Shown one piece after another: positions 16,566 through 25,765 of a DNA stretch of 64,000 nucleotides (the first letter of the stretch is position 1; each line of letters starts with the position of its first letter). Below the pieces are notes generated by a model. That model saw only the letters and a list, made by a program, of their open reading frames with translations. It did not search any database and was not told where the DNA came from. Made by a program: the position numbers and the translations under genes. The stretch is from contig OZ218962.1 in assembly GCA_965112735.1 (NCBI GenBank), forward strand, positions 310,001 through 374,000, given 5' to 3'. This DNA is from Phaeosaccion multiseriatum (lineage: Eukaryota; Protista; Ochrophyta, other classes).

Positions 16566-16626
<61 letters not shown>

Positions 16627-17040
16627 CTTGCGTGCGCGCTCTTGTAGTCGTCCCCCCCCCCTTCCGCTCTCATATGCTCTCTCCCCTCCCTCCGCTCACC
16701 TCCAGCCCTCGTCTGTAGAGTCTGACTCCGTCACCCCCATTTTGTGTGTGTGTTTTTGTTCACGTGTTGTGTGTCTGCGCCCACACAGGGCGACGCCTAT
16801 GTACCTCCTGCGCCCCCCGCGGGGTCCGAGCCGCCCAAGAAGGAGGGCCGCAGGGGCAATCGCGCCGGCTTCGAGGGGAAGAAGAACGACTTTATCAACA
16901 AGGAGAAGGTCGGGGGGGGAGGGGGAGGAGGAGGAGGAGGAGGAGGTGGAGGGGGCGGGGGAAGGGGGGGAGGCAGGGGCGGCGGAGCGAGTGGAAGAGG
17001 AGGCAGAGGGGGAGGCCGGGGAGGAGGAGCGAGAAGATAG
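13290..17040 (+). CDS. SURF6: SURF6/RRP14 nucleolar ribosome-biogenesis protein (multi-exon)
   Basis: N-terminal RRP14-like FFSAMLEMIPEE and KKARYD. C-terminal SURF6 motifs: W..AM..A.G...KND.SLLRKAIKRREK.K.KS..EWQER, KREENLKKRK and RAGFEGK. RGG-rich tail ends at 17040. Confidence 0.9.
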
Positions 17041-17270
17041 GCGTGTGAGGTCCAGCGGAAGCAAGGACGTGCGCGGAGGGCTTTGGCTGAGCAGCGGTGC
17101 GGCTTGGGAGGCGATGTGCTGCATAGCGGTGGTAGAGGGGTGGGAGCTCGTGCTTCCAAGGCCCTGGGCGGTTACTTTCCTCGTGTGGCGTGCGGGGCTG
17201 TGTGTTGGCGGGCGTATCGAATAGCGAAGGACAGAAGAGTCCCACACATACACATCGACCCCTGACGTGC

Positions 17271-17412
17271 TATTATGCTATCTGCTATCGCCGGCGCCAG
17301 CCGGCGTGCTATCTGCTATTGCCGGCGCCAGCCGGCGTGCTATGTGCTATCGCCGGCGCCAGCCGGCGTGCTATGTGCTATCGCCGGCGCCAGCCGGCGT
17401 TTTGTGCTATTC
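17271..17412 (+). repeat. Left subterminal tandem repeats (~31-bp unit, gctatcgccggcgccagccggcgtgctatct/gt, 4-5 copies)
   Basis: Directly visible tandem array adjoining the left TIR. Confidence 0.9.
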
Positions 17413-17664
17413 GCCCCCCCGGGGTCGGGGGTGGGAGGGTGCGCGTGCGGGGGGCTAGGAGCGGAGGAAGCAACTCACACGTGTTTCATTGCCATTAATT
17501 CGCGTCAGTTCTTGTATAGTATGCCTAAGGGAGTATATCAAGGTCCACCCTCTGCCTGGCCTGGCTGACCTGCTGCCCGTGCACCCCTACCTCTCCGCCC
17601 TGTGATTGACTGGCTCTCCGCTAGCTCAGCCGGCGGACGGCCCGATCGACATTGTGCTCGCCAA

Positions 17665-20600
17665 TCAGTCACTTTTACCACTAGGGCAGGCAGCATTCAC
17701 TCCGTCACAATACCAGTCCCCTTCAGGAAGCGTAGAGAGGGGAGGGGTCAGGCAGTACGTGTGAAACTCCTCATCGCAGCCGTCACATAGCAACATTTTG
17801 TCGTGGTCAACATCTTTCTGACAGACTAGACATGCAGTGGCTTCGCTGGAGCTAGAGTCTGCTGCTTTTGCCGTGCCACGAGACAAAGCCCCATAACTCT
17901 CGGGCTTGTTTACCGTGCGCCCACGTGAGGACATCGCCCCCACCACCTTTCCGATGATGTTCTTGCGCAGTGTTCTCAGGTTCAGCGCCTCCTGCTCGCC
18001 ATCACTGCTATCGTCCTCAGACATGTCCTCTCCCATGTGCACGCTTGGGTCGGGGGGGGCGTATCCCATCGCCTTGGCCACCTCTTGGCCCTCCGCCTCT
18101 CTGTTGACAATCTGCTTGCACTCCTCGTGCTGCTCCTCCGTGATGGCAAACCTCCGAAGCCTTCTCTGCGCGCACACCCCTCCTGAAGCTGCATGTGAGC
18201 CTTCGATGTACATTGCTTCGTGGTAGCGGGGCAATGCGCCATAAATGGCAGCACAAGACACAGAAGCCTCTTTCCCGCCGTCGACTTCGTAGACGACTGC
18301 TGCAGCCCCATCCCCGTCCTGGGACTCGTCGGTAGAGTCCTGTTCAGCGACGTGAAAGTATGAAACACCAGGCTTTGCCGGAACCACCTTCTGCTTGGAG
18401 CCTCGTCCCTTCTTCGAGACGATCACCTCCTTCCGAAGATCGACGCGAAGCTGTGCAAGAAAAAAGCTCTCCTCCGACCCCTTGTCTGCCCTGACTATCA
18501 CAACGTCATTTGCCCTGTAGAGAATGCGAGTTCGGACGGATTCACCGGTCTTCCGTCCTTTCTGTCCGCGCTTCCTCGCTCCCGAGCTCTCATGCAAGCG
18601 CGACAGGTATCCACTCGGGTCGTTGCTTTGCGCAGAGTTGGGAGCAAACGCCACCGAACGCGGGGCCGCTCCAACATTGTACTTCCTCTTGTTGGTTACA
18701 CGCTGCTGCGGAACCTTCCTAAGACGAGCCGCCGCATTGCGAAGCGTCTGCGTGTCCTTCTTGCGCTGCTTCCGTTGCCCTTCGTCAAGCTTCTCCGCTA
18801 CCCTTGGTCGCTTCAACACGGGTGAAGCCACCAATCTGCTCTCGTTTTGCTCCAGCTGGTATCCCGCCCTGAGCTTTCGACCGCTGCTGTTGACGCTGCT
18901 TGTGCAGTAGGCAAAACCCATGCTGGGGTTGGCCTTCTTCGCAGCCTCAAGCATCACAAGGCCCCTTCTTCGGGCATACTCAAGAGCGTCTGGAACATCC
19001 TGGCGGCCTTCCCTTTGCTTCGTGAAGAAAGTCTCAACATTGAGGGTCAAAACGCTCCTCATCTGCATCTTCTCCACGATGCCGCGAGGCACTCCCTGCT
19101 GACGGAAATGAGCGAGGAAGCATCAAGCAAGGAGCGAACAGCGAAGCCGTGAGACGAAAGGGCAAGGCTGATTTCCAAACGCACGCGCCCACGGACACGG
19201 ACATTTTTACTCACGCACTCACGCACACACACGCACACAGCCATGGGGAGCACCCCCTTCTCACCTCTGCAAGCATCCGATGTAGCATCCGAGGTAGTGC
19301 CTGCAGGCTCGCCTTGATAGCACCTCGAACTTCGCGTGATGGCATTCCTTCAGGGCCCTGGAGAGAGACCAGGGATTTGCCTGTGGCAGCTGATATCGCT
19401 TTCCCCATGTGACTGAGAGCCAAGTCGACCACATGAAGCTTGGCAATGCTCTCCTCCATCGTGCGTGCGTTGTTTTGCATGTCTTTGCCATTCTCATCCA
19501 AGTCTTCGCCCTGGAGCTGATACGCCTCACTCAACATCCGTTGTAGTGGGATGAGGTGCTGGGCGTAGACGTAGCAGTCCGAGATCATTCGAATGCACTG
19601 GTTTCCAGTGTCGGACAAGAAGAAAACGTTGTACACGAAGCAGCCGAACGTAGGTCTGAACAAAGGTACTTTCGATGCCGTACCGCTGGCAGTGCTCTCT
19701 CCGGGTTCTGTGTTTCCCTGTCCGCCCATCAGCACGGATGATCCCTTCCAGCTTAGCACCCCACTGTCACGACGAAGGAGAACCTTGACAAGCGCATGCA
19801 AACCTTCATCTAGCATGAGGATGACGATCATATCTTCATCATCGTATGCACCGGGTGGGGCCAACGTGAGTCCACAAGGCTGAGTCCCCACGTGAGACTT
19901 CACGCACGTGAGGTGTGCGCGCCTTGGCTTCTCAACAGTACCATCTTCCTCGTCATCAGTCAGAGCCATGAGTGTATCTCCGTCATTGCCACTGCCACCC
20001 TCTGGTCCTCCGGCACGTTCCACATTGCCCTCCCAGACAAAAAGCGAGCTGTCGGCGATGCAGGCAACGCAGTCATGCGAGAGTGCTGTGAGGCCCGCAG
20101 GTCCCTTGGGTAGGTCACACAGCTTCTCGCTCACAGGTGCAAAAGGGTTGCCAGCGTCAAATGAGAGCCGGTGTAGTGCTCCCCCCCCGCCAGGTTCCTC
20201 TTGGGTGACAAAGAGGTCGAACGCGCGCTCAGAGGACACGGCAAGCGCAATGGCAACGGGGCAACGGATGCCCTCCTCTTCTCTCTCCTCGAGGACATTC
20301 TCCTCAGAAGTGCAACGCTCCTGGATCCGACGGACCAAGGGCACTGCCTTCAAATTCAAATGCCGTTGCTGAGTCTGTCTCCCCCGACCACGCGCTGCTA
20401 CATGCCCGTCCGGTTGCTGGTCGTCGTCATCATCATCGTCGCCCTCCTCCGCCGCCGCGCGGGGTCCCCTGTTTCCTGGAAGAGCGGCCAGCACATGCAC
20501 CACCCAAATCTGATTCGCTCCACTGTCACACATGTACACGTAGTCGCCAACCACGACGAGAGACCCAAGACTCTGGAAGCAGTCGTCTCGCAGAACAACC

Positions 20601-22947
20601 TCTGTGGTACAAGGCACATGATGGGCCTTGAGCATGCGCAGATGCCTGCCTGAACGATCGGCGTTGAAGATCATGCCAGAGCCATGATGGTAGCCCATAC
20701 CAGTCGGCTTCTGAGTCTGCGAGGCCATGTTCTGATGCCAGAAACCCCACGGCTCCGGGCACACGGTCACCCCCACGAGAGCACGGCGCTTCTCCCGCTC
20801 CTCCTCTGAGAGTAGAGCCAACTGCAGAGACGCCGTCGTAACAGCGATTGCGCTCTCCACTGAGAAAGGATCCTTGTTTTCAATGGCGTCAAGGCCAACA
20901 TTGGCTTGTACTGCTTCACTTCGAGCCGGGTCCAGATCGTGGAATCTGGCGCGAAGAGTTCGCAGTCCGACTAGCCAGCCCTGGCAGACGACCCACCAAT
21001 TGAATGTCGTAGCACGAACACACTTTACAAGGTGAGCCCCGTCAGGCAGTGCCTCATACCACCCCAGGGGGTCGTCCTCTCCGAGGGTTCTTGCCGCCAT
21101 TTTCCGAATGAAGGCAAGCTGTGCGCCATTACAGTCTGTTGAGATGCACAATGGTCGGAGACTCTTGCACACGAGCCCTTTCCTCTTGCACCTCGAGCAG
21201 ACTCTGCTGGAGAACTGAGTCGCGCAAACGCACTCACTTTCACCGCAAGGACCCTCCCCTCCGGTGGGACAAGCTTGGTGGCAATCACACGCCTCGCCCA
21301 TCTCCACCCACGAGGGGTTCTCCCCCGTCAGAATCCGCTGCCAGAAAAGCTCGAGACAAGGGATGCAAACACGCAGCGCCTTCATGATTTCGGTCACGCT
21401 CGCGGCAACACTTTTGTAGTCACCCCCTGCGGTGTGAAGCTGAAAACCGATGGAGCCCGTGTATGCCCCTTTCAGATCCATCATCATAACTTCCATCATC
21501 TCGGAACCCAGCTTAGGTGCGTCCTCGTCTCGCAGCTGGAACAGAACGAGTAGCGATAAGGGAGGGTTGACAGGAGGCGAAGCAAAGGCGGGGCTGCAGC
21601 GTGAGCGAGCGAGCGAGGAGGCGTGATTAAGATTGACGATGGATCAACAGTGATTCTGCCCCGAAAGATCAGTGGGAAGGAGGGGACGCCACGCACCTGA
21701 GCATCAGACTTTTCCAGTATTGCCTTCGCCTGCTCCAGTGTTGTATTTCCAAACTGATGTGCATTGCCCCAATTGGTTTGGCTGGTTGTATCAGTATGAT
21801 GGCCCTTGGCAATGACGAAGCCATCCATTTTGACAGTCACGGGAACCACAATCTTCTCGTTGCCTTTGTCGCCAAGAGTGTAGGCTTGGTCGGCACAGAA
21901 GCGGGCGAAGACATTGACGACGTTGATAATGTCTTCGACTTGCAGACCGTACCTCTTGATTAGGCCAGGCCTGCGCCTAATGAGTGCTCTCGGATGAAAG
22001 CCGCCTGTGTTCGCCCTGCGGAAGTAGTCCTTCATGGCCTGGTCCCTGGAGACGTTGGGGCCACGAACCTTCTTTCTGCGGGGTGCCCCATAGGAGAGCA
22101 TGGAGCATGCTGAACCAAATACGTTCTGCTGGGTCTCATTAAACTGTCGCAGCGTCTCGTAGCCATTGAGCTGCTTGCTCGCGGCCACAGTCTGACGCCT
22201 GGACCAAAGGCCGCTGTTCATGACCCAACGATGCACCGTTTGATACATGAAGTGACTCCGAGTAAAGTGCCCTCGATCAAGATGGAATTGGATCGCAAAG
22301 GGAACAATGTCGACATCGTTTACGTCCCGGGTAAGCTCTACACGCCCGCTGTCCGCGTCTTCCGTCACAGCCACCCGCCCATGGTCTTCTTCTGTCGCGG
22401 ACGAGCCCGCGGCGCCCATCGCCTTTGTTTGTGGCCAAATGTGAAACGGCAGAATCTTTATTGGCTTACAGCTGGCTGGGCCCATGGCTGGGCCCCACTG
22501 GTTCAAAAGTCCTTCATGTCTGGCCGCGATGGAGGGAGGAGTTGGGGGGGGGGGGGCGACTACTACAACAGCAGGAGAGGCACGCCAAGTCCAGTTGGCA
22601 GCAGGAGTCGGAGCCGGGAGAAGGCCCCTGAGAGGGCGAGGAGAGGGAGGAGTGCCAGCAGGAGTTGGAGCAGGGAGAAGCACAGTGAGAGGAGGAAGCG
22701 AGGGAGAAATGCCAGCAGGAGTCAGAGTAGGGGGAAGGACACCGAGAGGAGGAGGGCAGGGAGAAGTACCAGCAGGAGTCGGAGCCGACCCAGATCCGGA
22801 GGAGGAGGAGGGAGGAGGGAAGGAGAAAAGGGTCGAAGCAAAGGGAGACGGGGCCGCAGTCCCAGCGAAAGAGGATTCCCAGCAGGCGCGAGGAAAATGC
22901 GTCGGAACCAAAGTCCCAGCGACAGGGGAGTACGCCGAAGCAGCCAT
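17665..22947 (-). CDS. Multi-domain P-like DDE transposase with Cys-rich insert, NHL-like beta-propeller insert, BAH-like segment and C-terminal PHD finger; 3 exons
   Basis: Exons 22947 (or 22485)-21697, 21535-19265 and 19095-17665 join in phase 0 through GT-AG introns. Motifs: VTVKMDG (D at 21823-21825), CISTDC (D at 21134-21136), PDGAHLVKCVR (DxxH), KDPFSVESA, LTLNVETFF..R....P..LEY (E at 19033-19035). PHD: CLVC..LLCDGCDEEFHTYCLTPPL..PEGDWYC. Confidence 0.8.
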
Positions 22948-24445
22948 TCACAACACGCTTCTCACGAGCTGGGGTGGGAGGAGGGGGGGCGGCTTGAGGA
23001 CACCTATCTCCAGAGTACGGCAACCTTGGCATCGTCTTCTGAGGCACAAGACTTCGATTATGCCTTGCCCCTGAGTGCAGGGATGGGACAGGCAAAACCT
23101 ACCCCTCTCATGTTCGCGCATGTGGGGACATTTCCAAGAGGATGCCTCAACCCCGTCGAGGCTGATTTCAGTCTCGGCACATCGGTGTCCTGCAACACGA
23201 CCGAGCTCTTCGAGACCTTGCCCTACACGTTCCAGCTGGCTAATGAAGACAAGCGATTCTCCAGCTTCAAGGCCTTCCGTGGACATTTGACCAGCGAATT
23301 GCTCTTTCAGACGGAACAAAAGAAGAACGACATCACGATCAGAGCCTCCACGGCATTCAGACGTGGCAGAGGGTTGGATACAATCCGCGACGACGTCTCC
23401 CTGCGCCGCGTGGTACGTGTCGGGTACAACTGCCTCTCGATGTTTGTGCATTGTCTGCTACGGCAGCAACCCTTTCTTAAACCCGCCCCCCCCGCCCCTC
23501 TCTGTCTCTTTCTCCAACACACACCCAATACAGGTGCGCTCGTTCTACACTTTCCCTCCGGGCCGTATCGATCCCGACAAACGGTGGAGACTGGATCTGT
23601 ACTGCGAGCTACGCCCGAAATCAGGGGCGAGACAGCAGGAGAACGTGCAAATTTGCCTGTCTTTCCCTACCCAATCTCTGGACAGCGCCACAGATTTTTC
23701 GACCCATACCCCACCCAAGAAGGCAGGTCATCGAGGTGGTGCTGCCCGTGTCAGTGAGACCACCAGTGATAGTGAGGGAGAGAGTGCCGGCGGGACGAAA
23801 GGCGGGAAGGCGGGGCAAGAGGGGGCACTGACGAAGAAGGCGAAGAGCTGGCTCCACGCGCAAGGAACCAAGTTCTTTTATCTTTTGCGGGAAATGCCTG
23901 ATGTGGAGATGCAAACTCTCAGCGGAAGCAAGGTCGGTGATGCAGCAAGCTTCGTGAAGATCCATACGCCAGCTTTGATTCAGCTTGAGGCCAAAGCGAA
24001 CTTCTCCATCAGACACGCCAGAACATCATTGGATATGCTGGTATCTGTTGTGTGCACCAGGCCTGCTTGTCAGAGCGCCGGGAAGGGCAAGTACAAGCCT
24101 CAGTGGACTCATTTGTCTGGCGTTAAGCGCCACAGAGACTCCCACTCATCGAGCGGTCAGAAAAGCATGCAAGCTGCACTCTCTCACTTCCTACTGAAGA
24201 CGGCGTTGGGGAAGCAGGAGGAGGAGGAGCAGGAGGAGGAGGAGGAGGAGGAGGATGATGGTGGTGGTGATGATGATGATGAGGAGGAGGAGGAGGAGGA
24301 GGAGGAGGAGGAGCAGGAGGGGGAGGAGGAGGAGCAGGAGGAGGAGGAGGAGGAGGAGCAGGAGGGGGCAGCAGCCCTTCTTCCCACCAGAAGAAAAGCA
24401 GGGCCATGCCTGCGGCACAATCAGTGGCCGAAGCTGAGCAGCTGA
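22516..24445 (+). CDS. Transposon accessory protein, N-terminal part: RS-rich repeats, unknown domain, C2H2/BED-like finger, acidic tract
   Basis: ATG at 22516. A GT-AG intron at 23413-23533 joins the 22231-frame and 23363-frame ORFs in phase 0. CTRPAC...HLSGVKRHRDSH is a candidate finger, followed by poly-Glu. Confidence 0.55.
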
Positions 24446-25317
24446 CAGGGGACATGAAGGCGAGGCTGCTTGTCCTCGGCGCTGAGCAGGACATGCACAA
24501 GGAAAAGGGGGAGTACACCTCCTTCTTTTTGGACGCGATGATGACCACTGTATCCGTGAACGGAAACAGGGCACTACTCCCGTGCGCGTCTCTTGGTCAC
24601 ATTTTCAACCCAGCTGTGGAGAACTCCCCCATGCCCAACGTGTTGGCGACGGCTCCGAAAGGGTTCCTGCCGAAAGGTTACAGGGAGTCTGGTCTTACAA
24701 TGACGAAGTGTGAGCTCCTCGTCCTCCCTGCGAGTTTCAGCGGCCATTTCTCGACTGTCGCTGTCCTTCTACCTACCTCTGCAGCTAGTGACGACGGGGA
24801 GGGTGCTATGGCGTACATTCTGCACTTTGATACGGTCCGAAATGGGCGCCTCGGTCACCACCCTTCGAAGCGAGTGCTCCAAGCGACGCAGGTGTATGTG
24901 GAGAAGGTCATGGAGGACGAAAGAGCCCCTGGGACGGCAGCCCTCCGATTCCGGCAGGTCTTTGTTGGTGTGCCACAGCAGAAGGCCGGCTCGAATTCTT
25001 GCGGTCCGGCAACAGCTCTATTCATGTCGAAATTGGCTGTGGCAGACACCAGCCCCGTGCGCAAAGTGCTCTATGGTGTTGAGCAAGACAACAGCTGGGA
25101 AAGGGACGACGGTGTAGCGATTTTGTCTAGTGCGGCGGGGGCAAAGAAGGAGACCGTGGACCGCTTCTTGGCCGCGTGTGGGCTGCCGTGTCTGACCTGC
25201 GAAGAGTATGAGGCAGAGAGAACTCGCCTCTTTCGGGCGTACCTGAGCTCCGGGATGCGCAACGGTTCCTTGCCCGACGTTTACAACTCGGCCTTGCATA
25301 AGTGCGTCCTGGGTTAG
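24406..25317 (+). CDS. Ulp1/SENP-like (peptidase C48) cysteine protease carried by the transposon
   Basis: Catalytic residues in C48 order: LVLPASFSGHFSTVAV (His), YILHFDT (Asp), VPQQKAGSNSCG (oxyanion Gln and Cys). Confidence 0.8.
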   Translation: MPAAQSVAEAEQLTGDMKARLLVLGAEQDMHKEKGEYTSFFLDAMMTTVSVNGNRALLPCASLGHIFNPAVENSPMPNVLATAPKGFLPKGYRESGLTMTKCELLVLPASFSGHFSTVAVLLPTSAASDDGEGAMAYILHFDTVRNGRLGHHPSKRVLQATQVYVEKVMEDERAPGTAALRFRQVFVGVPQQKAGSNSCGPATALFMSKLAVADTSPVRKVLYGVEQDNSWERDDGVAILSSAAGAKKETVDRFLAACGLPCLTCEEYEAERTRLFRAYLSSGMRNGSLPDVYNSALHKCVLG

Positions 25318-25485
25318 TGAAGGAGAGATGGCTGCCTCGCGAGAGAGGGAGATGGGGGGAGAGGGGAACGCCAAGGTTCGCCCAGTCACCATTGTATTGG
25401 TAATATAAGACTGAAGGCTCGCATACTCTCTGCGCTCGACGTATGCTGATTAGGCAGGCAGCTAGGAGTGGAAAGGCTGTCGCAG

Positions 25486-25615
25486 GGCGTCTGCTATCGC
25501 CGGCGCGACGGGGCGTGCTATCTGCTATTCGCCGGCGCCAGCCGGCGTGCTATCTGCTATTCGCCGAGTGCAAATAGCATGCTATTGGGCGCCGGGGCGC
25601 CCAATAGCATGCTAT
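25486..25615 (+). repeat. Right subterminal repeats plus a perfect 20-bp hairpin
   Basis: gctat(t)cgccggcg units occur in the same orientation as the left array. atagcatgctattgggcgcc-gg-ggcgcccaatagcatgctat spans 25574-25615. Confidence 0.9.
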
Positions 25616-25765
25616 CGCAGATAGCATAATAGCACGTCAGGGGTCGAATACACAGTGGCGCTCAAGAGTTAAGCAAAGTATAGACCTGTAGTCGATGATG
25701 TTAATGACAGTACCGCCGACGAGTACATTGTAGCCGTAGCCGCTCCATCGTCGGCCGTACTGTGG

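Follow-up and report, generated by a model that had tools for sequence, protein, structure and literature searches.

A predicted P-like DDE transposase in Phaeosaccion multiseriatum with an NHL-type beta-propeller nested in its helical insertion domain

A stretch of 64,000 nucleotides from Phaeosaccion multiseriatum (assembly GCA_965112735.1, contig OZ218962.1, positions 310,001 to 374,000; hereafter the window, numbered from its first letter, with a G+C content of about 59%) carries what is apparently an intact copy of an 8.4-kb cut-and-paste DNA transposon, to judge by its sequence. The minus strand of this element encodes a predicted transposase of the DDE (Asp-Asp-Glu) type. An earlier reading of the bare sequence, referred to below as the original prediction, had proposed that a P-type catalytic core is interrupted here by a large NHL-like beta-propeller. 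The analysis presented below makes it very likely that the locus encodes a P-like DDE transposase with a nested propeller, in an element bounded by terminal inverted repeats (TIRs). The ends of the element and the exons and introns of the transposase gene are as follows.

17255-25647, no strand: whole transposon, 8393 bp between the TIRs
17255-17291, plus strand: left TIR, 37 nt, beginning TCGACCCC, 95% complementary to 25611-25647
25611-25647, minus strand: right TIR, 37 nt, pair of the left TIR
17248-17254 (left) and 25648-25654 (right), no strand: target-site duplication ATACACA, a perfect 7-bp direct repeat, read directly
21697-22947, minus strand: exon 1, 417 codons as an open reading frame (ORF); helix-turn-helix (HTH)-like region and strand beta1
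21536-21696, minus strand: intron 1, GT..AG, 161 nt; its removal restores the frame
19265-21535, minus strand: exon 2, 757 amino acids; strands beta2-beta5 of the RNase H fold, Cys cluster, second Asp, DxxH motif, helical insertion domain, propeller
19099-19264, minus strand: intron 2, GT..AG, 166 nt, with a CA/GT-rich repeat inside; its removal restores the frame
17665-19098, minus strand: exon 3; Glu-bearing helix, conserved C-terminal region, PHD finger, stop codon

The 18-nt terminal sequence occurs in the window only at the two TIR sites (0.05 occurrences expected). Target-site duplications in the P superfamily measure 7-8 bp, the shorter length of 7 bp being that of the P relatives Galileo and 1360, among others, and the present element, with its 37-bp repeats and 7-bp duplication, has ends as in the P/THAP9 superfamily. 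The P element itself duplicates 8 bp at its target (PMC7776569).

The transposase gene is divided among three long minus-strand ORFs (22947-21496, 21499-19211 and 19092-17665), which two GT-AG introns join into a single frame of 1651 codons. The frame is restored only when both introns, of 161 nt and 166 nt, are removed. Splicing of exons 1-3 is predicted because splice signals are present, the frame is restored and homologues run colinearly over both junctions: the spacing across the junction of exons 1 and 2 is 41 residues in the window and 40 in the relative P0014, and that across the junction of exons 2 and 3 is 16 residues in the window and 17 in the relative P0002. The first ~175 codons of the frame (22947-22420) consist of proline-rich repeats of low complexity. 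Since homology to the relatives begins only near codon 200 of the exon-1 ORF, the ATG at 22419 is a candidate start and may be the true one. An Arg/Ser-rich ORF on the plus strand (22231-23757) overlaps the proline-rich N-terminal codons.

The catalytic residues and the parts of exon 2 that bear on the architecture are given next.

21823-21825, minus strand: putative first catalytic Asp (D1), in VKMDGF, exon-1 residue 375; invariant in 31 sequences
21134-21136, minus strand: putative second catalytic Asp (D2), in ISTDC, exon-2 residue 134; nearly invariant, aligned to D303 of P transposase (6p5a)
21032-21043, minus strand: DxxH motif, DGAH of PDGAHLVK; D, H and K 90-100% conserved, aligned to SDTPHLIK of P transposase
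20780-21040, minus strand: pre-propeller helices, predicted first half of the helical insertion domain, exon-2 residues 166-252; the alignment of the P0014 model to P transposase runs through them
19577-20779, minus strand: predicted six-bladed NHL-type beta-propeller, exon-2 residues 253-653, by AlphaFold2 model and by structural and profile matches
19265-19576, minus strand: post-propeller helices, predicted second half of the helical insertion domain, exon-2 residues 654-671, 693-718 and 734-756; predicted local distance difference test (pLDDT) score >90, conserved in relatives
19033-19035, minus strand: putative catalytic Glu, in TLNVETFF, exon-3 residue 22; invariant in 27 sequences, aligned to E531 of P transposase

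The propeller is supported by both structure and sequence profiles. The motifs on which the original prediction was built all lie in one open minus-strand frame in exon 2: PDGAHLVKCVR stands at residue 164 (window 21046-21014) and KDPFSVESA at residue 221, while the blade-like motifs extend from KPTGMGY (residue 276) to FFLSDTGNQCIRMI (residues 638-651). A word-index homologue search with the second ORF (ORF2) alone returned nothing, and single-sequence phmmer against solved structures found nothing for either the first ORF or ORF2. Homologues were recovered by an exhaustive HMMER search of ORF2 against 1.8 billion representatives, with 103 sequences at E<=1e-3, including 36 at E<=1e-10, which is far beyond chance. 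These homologues served as the alignment for an AlphaFold2 model of exon 2 (757 residues), which reached a mean pLDDT of 85.1 and a predicted TM-score (pTM) of 0.85. The model contains six four-stranded blades, and the propeller is closed by its first strand, which completes the last blade. Two loops are disordered, at exon-2 residues 356-423 (20470-20267, acidic, with an Asp run) and 513-528 (19999-19952). Compared with solved structures, the model superposes best on the NHL domain of TRIM71 (Z 24.9, root-mean-square deviation (rmsd) 2.5 A over 250 residues, model residues 255-651), followed among others by Lin41 (Z 24.4), TRIM2 (23.6) and Brat (22.0), with SOQ1, NHLRC2 and PknD also matched. 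Foldseek likewise returned Pizza6 and the NHL domains of PknD and TRIM2 (target-normalised TM 0.67-0.79). The blade-like motifs thus do appear to make up an NHL-like propeller, as had been supposed.

In the structural search, lactonase-type propellers come to within about one Z unit of the NHL domains, so that the fold alone cannot separate NHL from SGL. A search of the ESM Atlas by the shape of the exon-2 model yielded just bacterial NHL/SGL propellers, and the wide structural search was likewise dominated by the propeller. The assignment to the NHL type comes from profiles: the family profile matches the SOQ1 NHL domain among solved structures at E 8.5e-20, and the Pfam NHL model (PF01436) matches 8 of the 37 family members, with a best E of 9.6e-10. 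The ESM Atlas feature search gave a weak NHL/SAP lead (0.82). The region between D2 and the catalytic Glu contains, as modelled, a genuine NHL-type propeller. It shares with the known NHL propellers (TRIM71/LIN-41, TRIM2, Brat, SOQ1, NHLRC2, PknD) the six-bladed fold, with Z scores of 22-25 and an rmsd of 2.5-3.2 A; the NHL sequence signature is seen in the family profile and, by Pfam, in some relatives, but not by Pfam in the window protein itself. The known propellers are terminal or free-standing domains. The present one is internal, its two ends lead back into a helical domain, and the long loops of its blade 2 are disordered or SAP-like.

Because the propeller dominates these structural searches with the exon-2 model, the likeness of the host protein to known transposases was judged on a propeller-free piece of the relative P0014 (residues 1-502, from D1 to the last pre-propeller helix), which folded with a pLDDT of 85.8. 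Foldseek matched this piece to two structures of the Drosophila P transposase (6pe2_A, E 3.3e-7; 6p5a_A, E 1.1e-6), and all other hits had E>0.1. In VIA-align, model residues 52-502 superposed on residues 128-436 of 6p5a_A with a Z of 10.5 over 293 residues, against 5.3 for the next structure. The piece and the P transposase share 11-13% identity. In the ESM Atlas, it lies closest to clusters of THAP9/P transposase families, which carry PF21787, PF21788 and PF12017. An RNase H-like fold resembling that of the solved P transposase is therefore present, as judged on P0014, and the P-type affinity claimed for the host protein was borne out: from D1 to the pre-propeller helices, the Drosophila enzyme is the sole significant match among solved structures. 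These models support the view that the transposase is distantly related to the enzymes of the P element/THAP9 type.

The motif alignments point in the same direction. The catalytic residues of P transposase are D230, D303 and E531 (PMC7776569), and the putative triad of the window protein is colinear with them and kept by all complete family members. The weak PF21787 matches found in relatives begin at D1. A profile of the D2 region places ISTDC on VSD(303)LG of P transposase and PDGAHLVK on SDTPHLIK. The exon-3 profile aligns TLxVExxF with IVE(531)HFFGSMRS, a match that is second-best in the whole Protein Data Bank and falls on the catalytic residue. The three proposed codons were found where the original prediction had placed them (21825-21823, 21136-21134 and 19035-19033), and its distance of more than 600 residues from D2 to the Glu holds as well, with 645 residues in the spliced model. 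We infer that the exon-1 Asp, the exon-2 Asp and the exon-3 Glu would form one active site.

The position of the propeller within the enzyme can be read against the P structure. The RNase H fold of P transposase is interrupted after beta5, ahead of the Glu helix, by an insertion domain that binds GTP and is almost entirely helical (PMC7776569). The insertion domains of Hermes (hAT), Tn5 and RAG1, described as structurally similar (PMC7776569), occupy the same topological position in their enzymes, between beta5 and the Glu-bearing helix. In the present family, the pre-propeller helices (~90 residues) extend the structural alignment up to residue 436 of P transposase, about halfway into its insertion domain, and the Atlas neighbours carry PF21788 (TNP-like_GBD). 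After the propeller, ~104 helical residues follow before the catalytic Glu, which lies 22 residues into exon 3. Taken together, the helices flanking the propeller on both sides (~90 residues before it and ~120 after it) sum to about the size of the whole P insertion domain. By the alignment ranges and sizes, the parts are most simply read as nested, in that the RNase H fold would hold the helical insertion domain and the latter would in turn hold the propeller. The proposal that the propeller belongs to a P-type helical insertion thus stands in so far as it lies between D2 and the Glu, and is refined in that the propeller appears to be nested inside the helical domain without replacing it.

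The predicted transposase would accordingly comprise an HTH-like region and an RNase H-fold core assembled from three exons, with one Asp from exon 1, the second Asp and DxxH from exon 2 and the Glu from exon 3. As in P, a helical insertion domain would split this core between beta5 and the Glu helix, and a six-bladed NHL-type propeller of ~400 residues would sit in the middle of that domain, which is predicted to face the DNA.

This layout is shared by the whole family. All complete members keep D1, D2, DxxH and the Glu, with a D2-Glu spacing of 540-640 residues, and the propeller spans 310-410 residues in every one of them. Since triad and propeller are kept together in every complete member, the propeller appears to be an ancient component maintained by selection, and no local accident. 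Two members come from named species, Priapulus caudatus (XP_014674326.1) and Pelagophyceae sp. CCMP2097 (M885DRAFT_591231), and the remaining ones are nameless proteins from marine and other metagenome contigs. The priapulid protein bears out the mention, made with the original prediction, of similar unannotated proteins in marine invertebrate genomes. Full-text searches of the accessible literature, subscription-only papers and Repbase reports excluded, turned up no description of this layout, and returned papers on RAG and piggyBac only.

Two further features lie outside the propeller.

21143-21367, minus strand: Cys-rich cluster between D1 and D2, with nine Cys nearly invariant across the family and a lower pLDDT
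17704-17832, minus strand: C-terminal PHD finger, Pfam PF00628, E 1e-11, 45 bits against a cutoff of 24

The nine-Cys cluster is probably a zinc-binding module; the description of P transposase lists six structural domains, and no such module is one of them (PMC7776569). The PHD finger, which is common to the closest full-length relatives P0002 and P0003, may resemble in sequence those that read the histone H3 tail in its unmodified state, AIRE and CHD4 being examples. The long loop of blade 2 differs within the family. A subgroup to which the Priapulus protein belongs has a SAP-like motif there (P0096 531-561, P0093 594-616, and also P0044, P0050 and P0056), and SAP motifs are known to bind DNA. 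In the window protein, the corresponding columns of the alignment (20470-20267) are taken up by acidic sequence of low complexity that includes an Asp run.

The similarities to the P/THAP9 enzymes (6p5a, 6pe2) are therefore those of layout: an HTH region followed by an RNase H core, a helical insertion between beta5 and the Glu helix, a D...D(+DxxH)...E series aligned at D303 and E531, and an element with TIRs and a 7-bp duplication. In contrast, the window protein has a propeller within its insertion domain, nine clustered Cys between D1 and D2 and a PHD finger at its end, and shows no detected THAP domain, a Leu in place of D528, an identity of ~12% and no match to the Pfam P-family models. 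Several of these observations, together with others, weigh against the proposed architecture and its P-type assignment. None of the Pfam P-family models (PF21787, PF21788, PF21789, PF12017, PF12596) matches the window protein, and PF21787 reaches 15-22 bits in four relatives, under its curated cutoff of 24.6 bits. In Pfam searches, the three window ORFs gave nothing besides the PHD finger; the NHL model in particular does not match the window's own protein, the sequence of which is too diverged. No THAP domain was found by Pfam in the window ORFs or in the 37 family members, although an upstream exon is possible, and no other N-terminal sequence-specific DNA-binding domain was detected; the N-terminal profile A2 gave no match among solved structures. 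The alignment of the Glu with E531 is not significant by itself (E 0.79). The GTP contact of P transposase at D528, three residues before E531, corresponds to a Leu in TLNVE of the window protein, the family consensus being T-L-x-V-E. Finally, expression and splicing of the gene are both inferred, as the locus is held by four public runs, all with unspliced contigs and all from one sample, which is probably the source of the assembly, and by no RNA run.

The low identity, the missing Pfam and THAP matches, and the lack of any counterpart of the Cys cluster, propeller and PHD finger among the six structural domains of P transposase (PMC7776569) would all suit a separate DDE superfamily of the DxxH type, on the P/Kolobok/hAT side and P-like in fold only. 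We nevertheless consider such a separate origin unlikely. The P transposase is the sole significant match among solved structures, with integrases, RAG1 and Transib far below it. Every one of the closest Atlas clusters is of the THAP9/P type, D303 and E531 are precisely the residues on which the motif alignments land, and the 7-bp duplication lies within the 7-8-bp range of the P superfamily.

Another possibility is that this copy no longer works as a transposase, being either a relic or a gene in the course of domestication, and that the propeller serves a host function. The absence of the locus from RNA runs, the failure to recognise an end-binding domain, and a proline-rich, low-complexity stretch of 175 N-terminal codons overlapped by an opposite-strand ORF could be taken in this sense. 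However, the frame is open over three exons with the catalytic residues all intact, the TIRs are 95% matched and the target-site duplication is perfect, which makes this reading quite improbable. That the three ORFs do not form one protein, and that the propeller comes from a separate captured gene, is barely credible: splicing is indeed predicted only, but D2, DxxH, the whole propeller and the following helices share one uninterrupted exon of 757 codons that folds as a single compact unit, and the same order of parts recurs in predicted proteins from unrelated contigs and from the two named species.

On the role of the propeller nested in the P-like transposase, the proposals are more tentative. 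In the transposases reviewed, the insertion domain within the RNase H fold touches transposon ends and target DNA, and that of P packs on the transposon-target junction (PMC7776569). Given this packing, the propeller would be placed to touch DNA, a partner subunit or a recruited protein. A possible, though far from assured, role is that of a rigid, non-catalytic docking platform, acting in transpososome assembly or, with the PHD finger, on a protein or chromatin partner. The ordered core of the propeller is mildly acidic in most members, which is a weak argument against a general nucleic-acid clamp and a further point to be set against the proposed scheme.

RAG1-RAG2 and its ProtoRAG/Transib relatives likewise combine a DDE RNase H cutter with a propeller of six blades and a PHD finger, both of which belong to RAG2 in the case of RAG. 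The propeller of RAG2 is of the Kelch type, on a separate subunit, and the RAG core is Transib-related, whereas the propeller here is of the NHL type and covalently nested in a P-like core. A RAG1/RAG2-like recombinase was rejected as an identity for the protein: RAG1 and Transib reach a Z of only 4-4.7 with the P0014 piece, and for this reason, together with the different propeller types, the likeness is, on these models, an analogy and convergence at most, not homology. By the same analogy, the propeller and PHD finger might do within one chain the job of RAG2, docking on the core and coupling cleavage or integration to a chromatin mark or partner; we regard this as doubtful. If true, it would represent an independent, convergent case of chromatin-gated transposition in a P-like lineage.

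The use of GTP may also differ from that in P, since the equivalent of D528 is a Leu. The propeller might conceivably have taken over the positioning of DNA ends that bound GTP performs in P. The family raises the question of whether P-type enzymes can do without GTP.

A P-like DDE transposase with a nested domain of this kind would be unprecedented. It would represent a new way to build a DDE enzyme, with a propeller of ~400 residues nested in it and kept from stramenopile algae to a priapulid worm. The way in which a propeller together with a PHD finger can control a DDE cutter has until now been a RAG1/RAG2 question, and the family may allow it to be studied in a single-chain system. Proteins so far labelled 'hypothetical' gain a name, and an entire branch of P-like transposons seems to escape the current Pfam P-family models.

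The other half of the element holds two ORFs on the plus strand (24406-25317 and 23363-24445), transcribed away from the transposase. The 303-residue product showed no Ulp1/SENP protease family in a Pfam search, and the 360-residue product offers just a Glu-rich tail, with matches at chance level. All four public runs differ from the window in two places, with an extra C after 19252 in intron 2 and a G in place of A at 19626, which would change Val637 to Ala in the last propeller blade; these represent either a small assembly difference or an allele. Microsatellite-like CA/GT-rich repeats lie at 19212-19239, within intron 2, and at 16607-16634, and many short contigs from the runs pile up there.

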